DNA of 43,918 nucleotides from Perkinsus chesapeaki ATCC PRA-425 (Eukaryota; Protista; Perkinsozoa): positions 1 to 43,918 of the forward strand of contig JAAPAO010000277.1 of assembly GCA_013115145.1 (NCBI GenBank). The letters are read 5' to 3'. The notes beneath the pieces are model-generated. The model was not told where the DNA came from and did no database searches. It saw only the letters and a program-made list of their open reading frames with translations. The translations under genes were made by a program, and so were the position numbers. This document shows positions 11,302-39,624 of this stretch, in pieces. Each line of letters opens with the position of its first letter. Position 1 is the first letter of the stretch.

Positions 11302-12942
11302 TTATGATTCACCGAAATCCTCGATGGCACCCCAAGAGCCGATAACTATCATGGGGATGCACCAGATAAGGACAATGCAAATTGCGATGAACTCAATCTT
11401 ATGTAGTTTAATATACTTCTTTACGGAACCTAAAAGATATAGTGAAACTGATAGTGGTGGTGATAGTGGCAGCTTACCTAGAACGAATTGCTGTATTCGG
11501 ATATAATAGATACAGGGCATCATAGCAACCATGAAGACCATGGTGAAGGAACCCAGAACGTTAATCAAACTTTGAATGTTTGGAACGACTTCGGCGATCA
11601 ATAGTGTGAAGCCAACGCAGCAAAGTCGAGCAATGAACCTTTTAACCTTAGTCTTTAGAGAGACATCGTCAACATCAATGTGGCACCAGTACTCGACCGA
11701 AGAAGCAATGGGCAATAGCATCACAACATAATGAGGAATACTCGAGCATATCACTGCTATCTCGGTCAAGTAGCCCCAGACACCGTGAACAGGTTCATCA
11801 GGGGGAACGATGGAATCCATAATAGGATGAGCTTTCAGTTCATCACCATAACCGTAGTAACCGCAGATGCCAATACCAATGTATCTGAGATTATAGTTAA
11901 AAATACCATACATTGTCTGCTGCTGCTTACACTGTAAGTATAATAAGATATGCCGCCTCGGCTACGCCCTTGAAGTGCGTTGGTTTGGCCATATCTCGAA
12001 CCAAGGTAGCCACGGAATTGGTAACATTGAATGACAGAATACATACACCAAAGTTAGTAGCAATTGTCATAAAATCTGGTGCGAAAATATCGTATTTTGG
12101 CGGGGTAGTTGCGGTAATCTGGAACACAGGAAATGGGGACCATAGCGCTGCTGCTGTTGTTGTTACTTACCCCAGTGATGATGCCGTTGATGGAAACCAC
12201 AGCGAATAAAACAAGAATTGCAACCATACCGCATGTAGCCACATACGACACTTCGTTCATGGTCCTCAGGAACGTGAACGGAATGAATATTCCAGCCCAG
12301 ATTGCAATCCACCCCTTCTGGCCAACAGAAGGGACAAGCTTCTGTAATGTCTCGCCCAATAACACTAGCAATGAGGCGCAAATACCCGACATTGTTATAT
12401 GGACGATTAAGGCAGTTAAGAAGTGACCTGATGCACGACGATGGAGCATTCCTAGGGAGCCTTCAGCCTACCTATTTTGCCGTAACATACTTTTCCTAGA
12501 TCCTCATAAGTATAGACGGGACCCTTCTCTTTTGGGCACAGTGCAATGCCATCATATAGTTTAGTGACATTGAAACCAGCGAAAAGGGCACCAAGGAAAA
12601 GGCAAAGGAAGCCACCAACCCAACCGCACGCTGCGAACACAGTGGGTAACATAACGACACCCATACCTGGTAGAAAAGCCTTCAGTCATTATACGAAGTG
12701 CAACATTCAAGCTTACCAATAGCAGATAGAACCACACTGAAGACACCACGGATATCTGAACACTCTCCATGAGGTTCCTCGTTGTTTTCCTTCCGCACAT
12801 CCGAACGCCCCGAGCTGGCCGGAGACATCACTGCAGTAGTTGTATCATCAATTTGGTGCATCTCGACGTCACCCGAACTTTTCCCGCTTGGACCAACAAC
12901 GGTGTCGTCTGCACGTTGTTTCTTAAAGAAATTCAGAGCCAT
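11302..12942 (-). CDS. Amino acid/auxin permease (AAAP, Aa_trans) transporter, copy 1
   Basis: FSVVLSAIG|MGVVMLPTVFAACGW, YTYEDLGKVCYG, IPFTFLRTMNEVSYVA, FGVCILSFNVTNSVATLVRDMAKP and LLGSFTM-type motifs, with about 11 hydrophobic segments. Confidence 0.92.
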
Positions 12943-27774: not shown

Positions 27775-29420
27775 CTACGCTGATGAAGTGACCGATATAA
27801 AGTTTACTATTGCTCCATACGATCCGACGATGATCATCGGGAGGCACCACGTAAGCACCACCAATATGAGCCCAAACTCCAATCTGTTCGCTAATACGTA
27901 TTTTCTCAAAGAACCGTAGCGAAGCTGCTGAACTCTGTAGTAATACGTACATGGCATAACCGCGACCATTAGGACCATCGTGAAGGAGCCCAGAAGGTCC
28001 AGAAGGCTCGAAAGATTCGGAACCAAAACAGCAATTATGACTGTACAAAGAATTATACCAACACGGGCTGCGAACCTTTTAAATAAGGCCGACCAACTAT
28101 TGTCATCTACATCAATCTTAAGTGCATATTCAGCTGAAGCCATAATAGGGAGCACTATCACCTAAAAAGAAAACAAGTGACAACTTTCTACAACTCATTT
28201 AGGATATCATTGTCGACGAGACAAGGCACGATAGTGGAAAATACGGTTTGTGCTCATAGCCATGCAAATGGCGAGGGGTTTGAAACAGGAATACCAAAAT
28301 TAGAGCTTACTTGATAGTGTGGTACACTAGTACTGACTATGGCAACCAATGTAACATAAGCCCAAGGATCTGCATTTTCCATATGCAGTGGAACAAGAGA
28401 ATCTAATATAGTCTCATGAGCGAGTCTCCGCCCATATCCAACATAACCACAAACTCCGATTGAGATGTATCTACACATAACATTCAAGCATACTTTAATA
28501 ACAAGCTTCTCAAAACCTACACTATATATATTATACCATAAGCCCATCTTGAAACGGCCACGAAATGGGTCGGCTTTGCCATATCTCTAACAAGCGTTGC
28601 GACAGAGTTGGTAACATTGAATGATAGAATACAAACGCCAAACTTCGTAGCGAGCTCGAGTATGTTGGGGACAAATATATCGTATTCGACGATATCATTT
28701 GACACAACCTGATAATGCATAAAACTAACGTAGCGTAAATCGATTGGACTTACCTTATGGTAAATCCCGTTAATACTTATAATGAGGAAAAGACACGTGA
28801 TAGCCACCATTCCAACAGCCGCGACATAAGATACTTCATGCATGGTCCTTAAGAACGTAAAGGGTATGAAGAAGACACCCCATAGAGCCATCCATAATCT
28901 CTGACTTAACATTGGTAGTAGTTTACCAGTGGTGCTGCCAAGAATAACTAATAGGGAGGCGCAGGCACCGGTCATTGTAACATGGACAACAGTTGCCGTG
29001 AAAAGCCGGCCTGAAGCCAGAGAAGTCACCACTTTGATGAAATGATAACACTTACCGAATGTTCCGAAGCACGCTCTCCCAAGATCCTCATAAGTATATA
29101 TCGGACCGTTTGGCGATAATGCGATACCAAAATAAAGTTTGGTAACCGAAAACCCTGCAAAGTTAACAGCCAGCGTTAGGACTAGCGCACCGCCAACCCA
29201 ACCACAGGTGGCAAATACGCTAGGTAACATAACGACGCCAAGACCTGGAAAGAGAGTAAATAAATGCACTGACGTTTGAGTGATGATAGCCCTTACCAAC
29301 AGCTGAAAGAGCTAAACTGAAGACTGCTCTAACATCTGAGCATCTACCAACATGTAACGAGCTTTCAGTAATCGGCGGCTTGATCGTATCAACTGAGTTC
29401 GCAGGATTGTCGTGCATCAT
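27775..29420 (-). CDS. AAAP amino-acid transporter, copy 2
   Basis: Same motifs and intron layout as copy 1 (LGVVMLPSVFATCGW, YTYEDLGRACFG, FLRTMHEVSYVA, SFNVTNSVATLVRDMAKP, LLDLLGSFTM). Confidence 0.92.
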
Positions 29421-30048: not shown

Positions 30049-31644
30049 TTATCCAAAGTTCTTAATAGCACCATAAGAGCCCACAACAATCATAGGAACA
30101 CACCATGTCAATACAGCACATATAAATACAAACTCAACCTTGTGAGACTTGATATAGGTCATGAACGAACCTAATAATAACAATTGACTAAAGCGGATTG
30201 GTTTAATTAAAAGCTATTCTCACCTAGAAGCATCTGCTGTATTCTCATATAATATATACATGGCATCATAGCTACCATAAAGACCATTGTGAAGGAACCG
30301 AGGATATCAAGAAGACTTGAGATGTTGGGGACAGAAACGGCTATGATTGTGGTGAAGATGATACAGGCCAAACGAGCTAGGAATCTCTTGATTCCAGCAC
30401 GACGAGAATTATCGTCGACATCAATATTCAAGACGTACTCCAGCGATGATGCGATAGGGAGTAAAAGAACCTGAACCAATATAGTTAACAAAGTGACCTC
30501 ACACAAATCTTGCAAGGTGAACCTCCAAGATACGCAACTTACCACGTAATGGGGAACACTGGACATAACAATAGCTATCAAAGTTACATATGCCCATGCC
30601 CCAGAGACAGGCTGATTAGGGGGCACTATCGAATCCATGATAGGATGATCCCTCAAAGAGCGACCATAACCGAAATAACCACACACACCGATACCGAAAT
30701 ACACGGTGAATATTATACCATAAGCCCATCTTGAAACAGCAACGAAATGGGTCGGCTTTGCCATATCTCTAACAAGCGTTGCGACAGAGTTGGTAACATT
30801 AAATGATAGAATACAAACACCAAAGTTGGTAGCGATCTCGATAAAGTCAGGTACGAATATATCGTAGACAATAGGCTCGGTGGAGGTTATCTAAAACATA
30901 ACAATAACGAAAAACATACTATCAAAAATGCCTTACCCCAACCATCAAACCATTGGCACTGACGACGGCGAATAATGTAAGAATTGATACCATACCAATA
31001 GCAGCAACGTAAGATACTTCATGCATGGTACGTAGGAAAGTAAAAGGGATGAAAAACACAGCCCAAATAATAATCCAAATACGTTGTGAAATACTCGGTA
31101 TCAACTTGGTGGTATTCTCACCCAAAAGCACCAACAATGAGGCACAGATGCCCGACATCGTCACATGAACGATTAAGGCAGTTAAAGCACGACCTGAAAC
31201 ACAACAACGTGAAAAGGAACGATGCAATAAAACACTTACCCCATTTGCCGTAACAAGCTCGTCCAAGATCCTCATAGGTGTACACGTGACCCTTCTCCGT
31301 AGGAGTTAACGCTATACCAAGATAAAGCTTGGAAACAGCGAAGCCTGCGAATAGGACACCAAGGGTAAGGACAAAGGCACCACCAAGCCAGCCACATGAG
31401 GCAAACACTGTTGGTAACATAACAACGCCCATACCTAACACAAGATAATAAGTTAAAAAACGACCGAAGGCTTACCAATGGCAGATAGAACAATGCTGAA
31501 AACACCTCGTATGTCAGAGCATTTTCCATGATGACCTTCTTGGTCAACAATAACTTTACCGGCCTCCTCGAAGCTTTCACCAGCAGGTGCATGATGCACA
31601 CGTTTGAGTTCAACGTTGCTTGAAGATTCTTCAGCTATTGTCAT
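30049..31644 (-). CDS. AAAP amino-acid transporter, copy 3
   Basis: MTIAEESSSNVELK...FSIVLSAIG|MGVVMLPTVFASCGW, YTYEDLGRACYG, FLRTMHEVSYVA, LLDILGSFTM, ending GSYGAIKNFG*. Confidence 0.92.
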
Positions 31645-34067: not shown

Positions 34068-35231
34068 ATGTTTAACCTCCTATTCCCCATATGCTTTGCA
34101 CTTAGTGCACTGGGCCGCACAGTAATTGCAGGCTCGCCGATGCTGAGGGCTTCGGCGCACACTTGCTCCAGTAGCAACTTCTGTGAGGTTGACTCGAATA
34201 ACTATCCTGATATGTTACCGATGGGAGATATATCTGTCGTTTCCTTTAGTATTGATGATCTTGGAGAGTGGTTCATCGCTGGCAAAGAGAACGGTATCGG
34301 CAAACTGTGGGTGGTATCATGTGATCTCCAGTCATACAAGCTTGTTGTTGAGAAGAACTTCTCCGATATTGAGGTCTCCCCTGATGGCAGTGAAGTCTAT
34401 GGCATTGCGGATGGATCGGTTTATGATGTCCTTGCTACAAACCCCAACGAGTTTATTGAAATTGCTCCGGCCGACCCTACTAGAGACTACACTGGTGTTG
34501 CATTTGATTCGGAGCACCAGTTGCTTTATGTGACCGGTAAGGCATCTAACTCGGTATATACATTTGTAAAGAATGGTAGTTCATGGAAGCCAATGCAGGG
34601 TTACACCAATGATGCTCTACAGCACCCTACATCAATTCGATATCTTCAAGGTTACATCTATATTAGAGTGTCTAATGGTGTGGCTAGACTCAACTTCGCT
34701 GCTGGCAGAGATCAGACCCCCGTGATGTACACCAACTTGGGAATTACTGGCGATGAGGATTTCACTGTGGCGCCTGATAATTACCTTTACTATAGGCATG
34801 GTGATGATGCTGTGTACAGGAAGCCATTGAATGACCATGGTCATGGTGAACTATATGCTGGTGGTTGTGGATGTGGTATGAACGATAATCAGATATGTAC
34901 TGCTGGTGAAGGTAACTTAGTGTATGATCCTGTTGGATCACGTGTTGTGATGCAAGATTATATCGAAACTGGCAAATTCCGGTTTCTGTCTTCTTGTGGA
35001 GGATTTTGTCCTCAACAATCATCAAGTGCTTCACTCCACACTACTTCATTGAGAACGACTCTCCCTTCCACCACAGCAACTGCTACTTCGACGACCACTT
35101 TAACAACAGGATCGTCCTCCGTCCAATGTGATGCTTATTGTGGCTCTATTACTCAAGGTAGCTACTGTAAATATTGGTTGACGCCCAGCGTCTGTGAAGG
35201 AAATAACCTCCCATGCTCTTGCGACGAGTAA
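34068..35231 (+). CDS. Intronless secreted protein: beta-propeller + Thr/Ser linker + C-terminal 6-Cys module
   Basis: 387-aa single ORF with a signal peptide, about six blade-like segments (DIEVSPDGSEVY, GVAFDSEHQLLYVT, DFTVAPDNYLYY, NLVYDPVGSRVV), a TTLPSTTATATSTTT linker and CDAYCGSITQGSYCKYWLTPSVCEGNNLPCSC. Confidence 0.85.
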   Translation: MFNLLFPICFALSALGRTVIAGSPMLRASAHTCSSSNFCEVDSNNYPDMLPMGDISVVSFSIDDLGEWFIAGKENGIGKLWVVSCDLQSYKLVVEKNFSDIEVSPDGSEVYGIADGSVYDVLATNPNEFIEIAPADPTRDYTGVAFDSEHQLLYVTGKASNSVYTFVKNGSSWKPMQGYTNDALQHPTSIRYLQGYIYIRVSNGVARLNFAAGRDQTPVMYTNLGITGDEDFTVAPDNYLYYRHGDDAVYRKPLNDHGHGELYAGGCGCGMNDNQICTAGEGNLVYDPVGSRVVMQDYIETGKFRFLSSCGGFCPQQSSSASLHTTSLRTTLPSTTATATSTTTLTTGSSSVQCDAYCGSITQGSYCKYWLTPSVCEGNNLPCSCDE

Positions 35232-36957: not shown

Positions 36958-37146
36958 ATGTCTAAGCCCTACTTATCCCTGTTCTGTATCATTTGGTTGT
37001 TCATTCTTGGTCCACTGCAATGTTATGCTCAACCCCGTGCCTTGGAAGATGTTGTTTGTCCACACTTCTGTGATCGTTGCCCACCACCCAATAAGTGTAC
37101 CGTTCAGGTTTGCTGTGGATGTCATTGCCGTTCACCCGATAGCTAG
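36958..37146 (+). CDS. Small secreted 8-Cys peptide precursor, copy 1 (62 aa)
   Basis: MSKPYLSLFCIIWLFILGPLQCYA|QPRALEDVVCPHFCDRCPPPNKCTVQVCCGCHCRSPDS*. Similarity to copy 2 starts at the ATG, and 3 of 4 differences are synonymous. Confidence 0.7.
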   Translation: MSKPYLSLFCIIWLFILGPLQCYAQPRALEDVVCPHFCDRCPPPNKCTVQVCCGCHCRSPDS

Positions 37147-37212
37147 CTCCTTGGCGATCATTTGAGCCTCCCCGCTAGAGGTAACCTGTCTCAATATACT
37201 TTAATGTTTAAG

Positions 37213-37382
37213 ATGAATCCTCCACCTTGCGCGGTATACCGTGTAGCACTCAACTGCAGTATCAGTAACTGCTTTTCACTTGAGAAAGAGTTGTGTACGA
37301 AACTAAGTAACAAGCATAATGGTTGGAACACCAGTTGATCGGCGCGACTAACAAAATACAGAACCATGGTGTGCGGCTTGGA
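37213..37382. repeat. Second duplicated block downstream of each peptide gene (37213-37382 vs about 39107-39274)
   Basis: cctccaccttgcgcggtataccgtgta...gtgcggcttg is shared, with scattered substitutions and a 2-nt indel. Confidence 0.9.
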
Positions 37383-37741
37383 TAATATCACTTCTCTGAG
37401 CCTGTGTGTTTAGTACAGCTTGGATGGGTTATGGACGACATCCACGCCGTCACTCGATATAGTCTTCCTTGGTAAGTTGATAGCTGAAAAAATGACCACC
37501 GAAGAATGAGTCCTAGTCCCATTCACTTTACAATTGTGGTTGCTGTTGTATCCACTTCTTCAACAAGTGCAAAGTTCCTGTATTCAATGTAAAGTGACTT
37601 GATTCAAGTCTGAAAAGCTCAACTGAGGTGAAGACACATAGAAGTAAGCCTTTTCTTCACTTCCGCAACATCAATCGCCAGGTATCGTCATGACATCGAG
37701 CGAAAGTAATGGCATGAAAAGTGCTTTGGTGGGTCCTCCTT

Positions 37742-38058
37742 GAAGACCTCCTGGAGGCTATTGGGACTTTTCTTTGTAGTTGACGAACATTTCGACTCCC
37801 CATCACGAGTGGTATTATACCACTGGTATACCCACGAACACGAACAGCAGTAAAGTCGCTCATTCATTCATTGTTCGTACCCCCGCAAAACTCTCGGTGG
37901 ACTTGATTTGGCCGCTCAAATCCTGACGCTGAGAGATTCAACTTGCGCGTCTTCGTTTGCCGCGAAAGAACGGGAATGCCAATCATCGTGGACTCACAGG
38001 GAATGCTTCTCAGAGGAGGGGCAATCCGCTAGCCTCGATAATGGGTATCGGCACCTGA
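37742..38058 (-). pseudogene. Decayed copy of exons found at 40577-40900
   Basis: gacctcctggaggctatt...ccccatcacgagtggta...gtttgccgcgaaa...atcggcacctga is shared. KLNLSASGFERPNQVH aligns with KLDLSASGFGRPNQFH, and stops or frameshifts are present. Confidence 0.65.
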
Positions 38059-38808
38059 GTCGAATTTCATGATGTGATACTACTCAAGACTGCTTGCGAA
38101 GCTATCACAAGCTCTTCGAAAGACTCCCATACACTGAGTAACCCCACTGCTAGTCAGTGGGTTTACACATTATTTTACGTATTTGAGGTCAATGAAGGGC
38201 TCTACAGCACTCATGTAATAGACGTTGCAAAAACACGTCTCAATCTCTTGAAAGCATATGCGCTCTACTGGGGACCCAACTTGGGGGGATGCAAGAGCCG
38301 GCTCCAGTCATACGTCTTGCGCCATTGCAAGCAAATAGTAAATATCAACAATCCGAGTCCTTGGGGACATAGGAAGGCGGAGGAGACTCTGACGAGGTGC
38401 GGGGTACTTCATGACCCTCGGTGAATGATGGTATACAGTGTGGAACTCTGATGACATTCCCAACAAGGTGCTGTTGGCAACACCTACAGCCCCTCCATGA
38501 TGGAGGCTCCATCGCCGTTATTTGCGATCTACTATTATCAAGCCATCAGACGCTCTAAATCAGCACCGACGATTCTTTGGGAGAGCAGCCCTCCTAGGGC
38601 CTTCTTAGGTCAGGTACTCCTTTGAGACCACAGGACTGAAAATGACTAAGATTGATGATTATCGGGATGTGAAAGCGGCAACGGAGAGAGACAGTCGACT
38701 CTATTTTTCCCGTGGGACGGCAGTACAGCTCCACTTTTGGGCAAGTAGAAGAAATGTTCTCAAGATATCTCACAAGCTCGCTTCGTCATTTAAGTTGCTA
38801 TCCTCAGT

Positions 38809-39030
38809 ATGTCTAAGCCCTACTTATCCCTGTTCTGTATCATTTGGTTGTTCATTCTTGGTCCACTGCAATGTTATGCTCAACCCCGTGCCTTGGAAGA
38901 TGTTGTTTGTCCACACTTCTGTGATCGTTGCCCACCACCCAATAAATGCTCCGTTCAGGTTTGCTGTGGATGTCATTGCCGTTCACCGGATAGCGTTCCC
39001 CTTGGTGGTCATTCAAGTGTTGGTGGCTAG
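38809..39030 (+). CDS. Small secreted 8-Cys peptide precursor, copy 2 (73 aa)
   Basis: Identical to copy 1 except T->S and an 11-aa C-terminal extension (VPLGGHSSVGG). Confidence 0.7.
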   Translation: MSKPYLSLFCIIWLFILGPLQCYAQPRALEDVVCPHFCDRCPPPNKCSVQVCCGCHCRSPDSVPLGGHSSVGG

Positions 39031-39624
39031 GAGTAACCCGGATTTAAGGCTGTGACAAATCAGGTATAAATCAGCTTTGTTGCTCACTTATCACGAGTGG
39101 TCGTCGGTGAGTCCTCCACCTTGCGCGGTATACCGTGTATCACTCAACTGCAGCATCAGTAACTGCTTTTCGCTTGAGAAAGAGTTGTGTACGAAGCCAA
39201 GTGACACGCACGATGATCAACACCAGTTGATCGGCGCGATTAACAACATACAGAACCACGGTGTGCGGCTTGAAATATCACTGTGAAGGGAGGATCCTAA
39301 ATGAAGGAGACACTCCGCCTTCCAACAGTAGCAGGCTTGAAACTCTGATACCTTAATCCATATTGATACTTCTTTTGTGATTTTAGTCGCGGCTCTCCTT
39401 GTTTGATTGGTGCTATGCTACACTGAGAGGGTGATAACTGGTGGGGTACTTTTTTCTGTTTGATCTTGTGTGTTTACAATTCAATTACAGTCATTGAATT
39501 ACTGTTCCCAAGTTATGAAGGATCTTTCATTGCGATGCAGCTACTACTTGCTTGACAAACGCAAGAGAATCCAACCCTGCTGAAAAGTCTACCATTATAA
39601 AATGAAAAATCGCTTTAACATTCC

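Follow-up and report, generated by a model that had tools for sequence, protein, structure and literature searches.

In the ciliate Euplotes, an alveolate like Perkinsus, pre-pro-pheromones carry a signal peptide and a pro-segment ahead of a small disulfide-rich peptide that is secreted, and cone-snail conotoxins come from small precursors in which a conserved signal precedes a disulfide-dense mature part. Small secreted cysteine-rich peptides are common among parasites and pathogens, and such a peptide in Perkinsus would not be surprising in kind. Clams and oysters suffer heavy losses from Perkinsus species; to our knowledge, few of the parasites' secreted molecules have been described apart from proteases and antioxidant enzymes. 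Here we analyze a stretch of 43,918 nucleotides from Perkinsus chesapeaki (contig JAAPAO010000277.1, positions 1 to 43,918 of the forward strand; hereafter the window), which contains two short plus-strand open reading frames (ORFs): copy 1 at 36958..37146, an intronless ORF encoding 62 amino acids (aa) followed by a TAG stop, and copy 2 at 38809..39030, encoding 73 aa followed by a TAG stop. An earlier note, made from the letters of the window, had described them as duplicated, intronless genes for a tiny secreted peptide with eight cysteines. Both ORFs are real and lie exactly where that note had placed them, and we put at about 0.75 the probability that they form a tandem pair within a Perkinsus-specific family of five members, which encodes pre(pro)peptides of ~60–70 aa.

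The two copies differ at exactly four bases over their first 62 codons, as had been counted before: three differences are silent (AAG/AAA, TGT/TGC and CCC/CCG), and one (ACC/TCC) replaces Thr with Ser. Relative to copy 1, the product of copy 2 has this T48S replacement and a C-terminal tail of 11 residues, which aligns with the first bases after the copy 1 stop codon. The similarity begins within ~2 nucleotides (nt) of the ATG, in agreement with the earlier note, but it does not simply collapse at the stop codon of copy 1, as that note had it. Past codon 62 the alignment is weak and gapped for about 70–110 nt, and then homology returns in a conserved 3′ block on the plus strand (37214..37392 for copy 1 and 39108..39282 for copy 2) with 88.8% identity over 179 nt. 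This block, which occurs at only these two places genome-wide, continues for ~110 nt downstream of the point where poly(A) is added to the copy 2 mRNA described below. Because conservation passes the poly(A) site and no relic of a spliced leader lies upstream, the tandem pair is the product of a DNA-level duplication, and an origin by retroposition is ruled out. The minus-strand frame that has its third positions in common with the plus-strand frame contains 6–7 stops, consistent with the stops previously noticed in that register. The sequence upstream of the ORFs has nothing in common between the two copies, which would fit 5′ ends made by trans-splicing rather than a duplicated promoter.

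Searching the whole 41.7-Mb assembly with protein and profile queries showed that the family extends beyond the window: the duplication recognized earlier stands, but the family has five members, not two. Copy 1 is the genome's top match to the family profile, and three diverged copies lie on two other contigs, two of them in tandem on contig C2959 (2111-2296 and 3195-3386; locus L006) and the third on contig C3284 (12221-12397; loci L003/L009). Searches with the family signal or the profile returned only the five members; a weak match elsewhere (C58:43143-43199, E 0.08), which had neither a signal peptide nor DNA similarity, was attributed to chance. The members are 57–76% identical at the protein level, with a single one-codon indel as the sole length change, and all eight core cysteines are kept in five of five copies. 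Between loci, only the coding sequence can be aligned, the flanks being unrelated. Because the flanks differ, the other copies are paralogues, and a reading of them as haplotigs was dropped. The pair on C2959, unlike the window pair, also has its 5′ flank in common. In the copy on C3284, some 600 nt short of the end of its contig, codon 21 is an in-frame TAA that interrupts the signal peptide, but the mature part is otherwise well conserved; the analysis drew on only the sequence downstream of this stop. The copy represents a pseudogene of recent origin, an allele or an error of assembly. A dispersed repeat or transposon, which the earlier note had named as a way in which its proposal might fail, is excluded by the small number of DNA matches (three places in 41.7 Mb for the coding sequence and two for the 3′ block) and by flanks that are not common between loci.

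Substitution counts by the Nei–Gojobori method, both between loci and within pairs, point to constraint on the encoded peptide. Between loci, the proportion of synonymous differences (pS) was 0.46–0.69 over the whole peptide and 0.60–0.78 in the mature part, with synonymous sites near saturation, whereas the proportion of nonsynonymous differences (pN) was 0.15–0.24. The resulting ratio of nonsynonymous to synonymous change (omega, or dN/dS) was 0.1–0.27 overall and 0.10–0.14 in the mature part, far from the value near 1 that had been suggested as a sign of decay. The differences are concentrated at third codon positions (for example, 12/13/28 at first, second and third positions), and even the invariant core C-S-V-Q-V-C-C-G-C-H-C contains many synonymous codon switches, including TCC versus AGC for the same serine. 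This variety of codons in an invariant peptide implies that the constraint acts on the protein, not the DNA, and high pS combined with low pN implies a real gene under purifying selection. Within the window pair, one nonsynonymous change per 140.7 sites compares with three synonymous changes per 39.3 sites (Fisher p = 0.03), and the non-coding block beside the pair has diverged by 11%. These substitution patterns show that the plus-strand frame is kept under purifying selection. The mature parts of the C2959 pair differ mainly by amino-acid changes, clustered in the loop that separates cysteines 3 and 4, and have dN 0.33 and dS 0.21, values that come from very small counts, too few for a claim of positive selection. 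Across the family, most of the variation falls in this same loop and in the C-terminal tail.

The transcript of copy 2 was seen in assembled RNA contigs from two studies (four runs in all). These contigs lie on 38792-39172 with no mismatch, gap or joint, and because they contain no joint, copy 2 is intronless. Three of them (runs X1, X4 and X5) begin on the genome at 38792 and are preceded by 18 loose letters of a spliced leader, which together with the genomic AAG complete the leader end ...GGCTCAAG. The contigs place the plus-strand trans-splice acceptor AG of copy 2 at 38793..38794, 14 nt upstream of the ATG, leaving a 5′ untranslated region (UTR) of 14 nt (38795..38808) after the spliced leader. 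A YAG 1–4 nt before each ATG had earlier been read as a possible acceptor; CAG is indeed present in both copies, ending 4 nt ahead of the ATG in copy 1 and 1 nt ahead of it in copy 2, but the junction shows that it is not the acceptor used by copy 2. Nor is an AG near the ATG a feature of the family, the C2959 copies having none within 35–60 nt. At the other end, the contig from run X4 stops at 39172 and continues with 12 A where the genome reads CTTGAG, and the poly(A) tail is thus untemplated; the 3′ UTR spans 39031..39172 (142 nt, plus strand), with poly(A) added after 39172. Copy 2 is thereby shown to give rise to a spliced-leader-capped, polyadenylated, intronless mRNA of ~400 nt, which bears out the earlier proposal of an intronless, trans-spliced gene, and the leader and tail together fix the strand of the mRNA. 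The P. chesapeaki genome has Perkinsus-type spliced-leader genes with the spelling ...CCATCTTGGCTCAAG/GT, which is the Perkinsus spelling given in PMC3101222 and PMC9399869; five such genes were found (on contigs C135, C411, C1631 and C2742), all with TCTT.

As a separate observation, runs labelled 'marine metagenome' (reverse-transcription PCR [RT-PCR], 454 sequencing, 2017) contain the copy 2 mRNA at 100% identity, and in one such run of ~2.6 million letters the mean word depth over 38792-39172 was 47.5. Either the sample contained the parasite or the label was applied loosely.

With the transcript in hand, the proposal that these are not genes at all, and that the ORFs arose by chance in a local duplication or repeat or belong to a transcript acting as RNA, is almost certainly wrong. 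It drew what strength it had from the window pair, which alone provides only four substitutions, and from minus-strand ORFs of 44–54 aa that overlap the region. These points are outweighed by the existence of five copies with coding-only conservation, intact frames in four of the five, saturated synonymous sites and retention of every cysteine, by an mRNA strand set by spliced leader and poly(A), and by a sequence that is not dispersed. As far as sequence evidence goes, this proposal is refuted, and we return to the reading of the ORFs as members of a family of peptide genes.

The translations suggest what the peptide might be. In copy 1 the predicted signal peptide comprises residues 1–24 (36958..37029, plus strand), with an n-region of MSKPY (containing Lys3), a 15-residue hydrophobic stretch from L6 to L20 that includes a helix breaker at G18-P19, and a c-region of LQCYA, in which positions −3 and −1 are occupied by Cys and Ala. 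The usual features of a signal peptide (a charged n-region, 7–15 hydrophobic residues, a breaker, and small residues at −1 and −3) are all visible on inspection of the translation, and a cut after Ala24 leaves exactly eight cysteines, an even number. We infer that these N-terminal 24 residues are a cleavable signal peptide and that the product is secreted. In copy 1, the 38-aa pro/mature peptide predicted to follow (37030..37143, plus strand) opens with an invariant P-R-x-L and continues with the eight-cysteine core, whose spacing, C-x3-C-x2-C-x5-C-x4-CC-x-C-x-C, is the one the earlier note had written down. Within this part the alignment has P2, R3, L5, the eight cysteines, P11, D15, V25, V27, G30 and H32 as invariant residues; the eight cysteines and one invariant histidine fall within ~24 residues, and a second histidine is present in four of the five copies.

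A mechanism that would accommodate these features begins with the signal peptide directing the product into the endoplasmic reticulum (ER), where it would be cut after Ala24, possibly with further trimming at the invariant P-R-x-L, to yield a peptide of ~34–49 aa. In the oxidizing environment of the secretory pathway, the eight invariant cysteines could pair into four disulfides and produce a compact, knotted mini-protein, in which the C-terminal half, C-S/T-V-Q/R-V-C-C-G-C-H-C, would be a fixed scaffold and the loop joining the third cysteine to the fourth, together with the C-terminal tail, would be free to vary. Once released from the parasite, the peptide may bind a conserved target outside the cell, either on the parasite surface or where parasite and host meet; candidate types of target are a host molecule, a protease, the parasite's own receptor and a metal. 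The best-supported description of these genes is an expressed, genus-restricted family of predicted secreted mini-proteins, each with four disulfides, a C-terminal scaffold that is fixed and a single loop that varies. A classical cationic antimicrobial peptide would have a clear net positive charge, which the predicted mature peptides do not have (0, 0, +1, −2 and −1 for the five copies, with copy 1 at 0); judged on charge, such a function is unlikely.

Several observations weigh against this account. The leader in the RNA contigs has the dinoflagellate spelling TTTT, whereas the genomic leader genes have TCTT; the leader letters in the contigs are probably derived from a DinoSL primer used for the RT-PCR libraries, and both RNA studies may share one leader primer. 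DinoSL-type primers have been used on P. chesapeaki cDNA (PMC3101222). Copy 1 had no RNA contig in the four runs, which is not proof of silence, and contig depth is no measure of expression. One family member, the C3284 copy, carries a stop in frame at codon 21, leaving the frame intact in four of the five. The proposed secretion, removal of the signal and disulfide pairing are read from the translations, and AlphaFold2 returned a mean pLDDT of 54 for the whole peptide (with the full alignment) and 56.5 for the mature part, values that leave a compact fold unsupported and are too low to bear on the earlier suggestion of an unfamiliar fold; the low-confidence models have a tentative hairpin over the C-terminal cysteine cluster.

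Known families offered no match. Pfam returned no family, whether queried with the full proteins (E cutoff 0.1) or with the mature parts of all five copies (E cutoff 10), and none of its toxin, defensin, hepcidin, WAP, GASA or metallothionein profiles matched the family peptides, consistent with the earlier remark that the cysteine spacing was unlike those of defensins, hepcidin, WAP and GASA peptides. The family profile retrieved nothing from PDB sequences at E up to 10, the top ESM Atlas scores for the whole peptide and for the mature part (0.76–0.81) were at chance level, a word-indexed protein collection queried with copy 1 yielded zero candidates, and among JGI metagenomes 165 pattern matches gave 0 confirmed cases. 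An exhaustive hidden Markov model (HMM) search of 1.84 billion protein representatives produced two matches. One (P0009), a repetitive protein of 2818 aa with 19 weak matching stretches, was judged spurious; the other (P0010), FOZ61_007584 of Perkinsus olseni, is a real lead. Neither the word search nor the exhaustive HMM search found the P. chesapeaki family peptides themselves in public protein collections; public annotation therefore missed them, as had been predicted from their size. In the literature on small cysteine-rich secreted peptides of Perkinsus, nothing on this family was found.

The P. olseni protein (106 aa, 'partial'; L016:492-2272, from JABAHT010000467.1 of GCA_013115115.1) is a gene model that wrongly joins two tandem peptide genes. 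The underlying intronless ORFs, at L016:504-695 (63 aa) and 2052-2240 (62 aa), lie 1.5 kb apart; the family profile gives them 29.5 and 26.3 bits, compared with a maximum of 13 in 3000 segment-wise shuffles. Their signal and pro regions (M-A-K-T-Y-L-S-L... and G-P-S-Q-C-D-A-Q-L-R-R-L-D) are homologous to those of P. chesapeaki, with G-P-x-Q-C-x-A-Q-x-R-x-L-D in common. Their mature part has six cysteines in the arrangement C-x4-C-x3-C-x6-C-x6/7-C-x-C, unlike the eight-cysteine core, and includes an H-H-x-H run adjoining a cysteine; taken alone, the mature parts have no significant similarity to the family, 751–940 of 3000 shuffles scoring as well. By eye, the stretch from the fourth cysteine to the final C-x-C is seven residues long and ends in Gly in both species, and the CC pair of P. 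chesapeaki falls opposite an E-K of P. olseni, both of which are only leads. No synteny was detectable in the available 7 kb of the P. olseni locus, a tblastx comparison of that locus with the window and the other family loci gave nothing at E up to 1e-3, and a cysteine-pattern scan found no family member in P. olseni locus L015, which holds the homologue of the window's upstream neighbor.

A motif just after the signal connects the two species. R-x-L-[D/E] is invariant in seven of seven sequences (five from P. chesapeaki and two from P. olseni), 2–3 residues after the predicted cleavage site: it reads RALED in both window copies (37036-37047 and 38887-38898, plus strand), RGLDG, RSLES and RALEG in the three other P. 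chesapeaki copies, and RRLDF at residues 28–32 of both P. olseni ORFs. It resembles the apicomplexan export motifs PEXEL (RxLxE/Q/D) and TEXEL (RRLxx), which likewise follow the signal and are cleaved after the Leu by the aspartyl protease plasmepsin V (PMV) or ASP5 (PMC4764566). Literal PEXEL is matched by only the two window copies among the five, and RRLxx by the two P. olseni ORFs. One might imagine a Perkinsus 'superfamily' in which a conserved signal and R-x-L-[D/E] carry different cysteine frameworks in different species, in the manner of venom peptides or apicomplexan export cargo, an idea to which we give very little credence. If R-x-L were nonetheless a processing or sorting site of the plasmepsin V/ASP5 type, PEXEL/TEXEL-type maturation would be older than the split between Apicomplexa and Perkinsozoa, and the motif would tag a group of host-targeted peptides in a shellfish parasite.

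A host-directed toxin or immune-modulating effector, acting on clam haemocytes or humoral defence molecules much as venom peptides and the small secreted cysteine-rich effectors of fungi act on their targets, would be a narrower version of the account favored above, and is plausible, although we think it somewhat unlikely. Its attraction is that Perkinsus is a parasite of clams and that the peptide is tiny, signal-bearing, disulfide-rich and encoded by tandem duplicates; moreover, the signal and pro region is kept between species while the mature cysteine framework differs, and in the mature part of the C2959 pair dN exceeds dS, on the very small counts noted above. However, the mature part is strongly conserved between loci (omega about 0.1), unlike that of arms-race effectors, and the family has only five members; conservative evolution and small family size show no arms race. 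No similarity to a toxin family emerged from Pfam or PDB sequences, the Atlas scores being at chance level, and the RNA runs are taken to derive from cultures rather than infected hosts, judging from the cultured P. chesapeaki cDNA of PMC3101222.

Expression in what were probably axenic cultures would suit a peptide directed at the parasite itself, either an autocrine growth factor or a pheromone comparable to the Euplotes pre-pro-pheromones. Such a signal would have the layout seen here (a signal peptide, a short conserved pro-segment and a small disulfide-rich part), a pre/pro region better kept between species than the mature part, and conservative evolution within a species. Against it, neither Pfam nor the exhaustive HMM searches revealed sequence similarity to any pheromone family, there is no receptor candidate, and we know of no mating system in Perkinsus. 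We consider self-signaling possible and rather improbable.

The density of cysteine and histidine brings up a different chemistry, in which the thiols would bind Zn, Cu or Fe in clusters (through CC-G-C-H-C and C-P-H-x-C) in the manner of a metallothionein operating extracellularly or within the secretory pathway, rather than pair into disulfides. The eight cysteines and invariant histidine in ~24 residues, the second histidine in four of five copies, and the H-H-x-H beside a cysteine in the P. olseni relative would all suit such a role. Metallothioneins, however, are cytosolic proteins without signal peptides, and thiols in the ER are normally oxidized. In addition, Pfam yielded no metallothionein match even with the E cutoff relaxed to 10, and the P. 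olseni relative has only six cysteines in a different spacing. A parallel in its favor comes from rust fungi, whose effectors are reported in a 2026 bioRxiv preprint (10.64898/2026.06.11.731755) to include cysteine-rich metal-binding proteins. Metal binding is possible, and we regard it as distinctly improbable. The description that we favor remains a family of predicted disulfide-bonded, secreted mini-proteins.

The surroundings of the pair include genes of other kinds. The upstream neighboring ORF (34068-35231) is 100% identical to the P. chesapeaki hypothetical protein FOL47_004899; UniRef calls it 'Sorl1p', no Pfam domain was found in the window ORF, and its family is tandemly repeated several times in P. 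olseni locus L015. The homologues of FOL47_004899 in P. olseni and P. marinus are only 44–53% identical to it, which means that these species are far apart. On the minus strand, the pieces at 11302-11913, 28517-29299 and 30207-30764 match Pfam Aa_trans (E about 1e-16 each), which indicates that the window holds at least two intron-split genes for putative amino-acid transporters. Upstream of the C3284 copy, two segments (L009:663-794 and 1287-1358) have weak tblastx similarity (33–36%) to window positions 28873-29004 and 34978-35049 and keep the order of the window's transporter and 'Sorl1p' genes; this similarity may be left over from an ancient segmental duplication, or may be noise.

An expressed, conserved, genus-restricted and unannotated family is a concrete addition to the candidate secreted repertoire of this parasite. 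The family also shows that genes of ~60 codons are systematically overlooked in these genomes, the sole annotated relative being the mis-joined P. olseni model. The peptides are small enough to be chemically synthesized and folded, which permits direct tests of structure, disulfide map and activity.

Among described systems, the scorpion short toxins of the chlorotoxin type (PF05294, Toxin_5) are comparable in size and cysteine content, with ~36 residues and eight cysteines, and were the top named Atlas lead (0.79), a score that is at chance level by calibration; they had no Pfam match to the peptides, and their CC pair presumably corresponds to cysteines 4–5, versus cysteines 5–6 in the Perkinsus peptide. 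Conotoxin precursors resemble the family in their small size, conserved signal and disulfide-dense mature part of 30–40 aa, in a signal that is more conserved between species than the mature part, and in the order of the cysteines (C-C-C-C-CC-C-C), which we take to be that of conotoxin framework XII. They differ in loop lengths, in lacking any Pfam match, including to Conotoxin_I2 (PF17557), and in an Atlas score (0.78, with 132 shared features) at chance level; furthermore, the mature part here is conserved within the species rather than hypervariable, and the peptide comes from a protist rather than from the venom gland of an animal. The Euplotes pre-pro-pheromones, whose architecture is so similar, differ in having no sequence similarity to the family in Pfam, word or HMM searches. 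The P. olseni pair, the one relative found, departs from the P. chesapeaki family in having six cysteines in the mature part rather than eight and agrees with it in being tandem, intronless and 62–63 aa in length, with a homologous signal and pro region.

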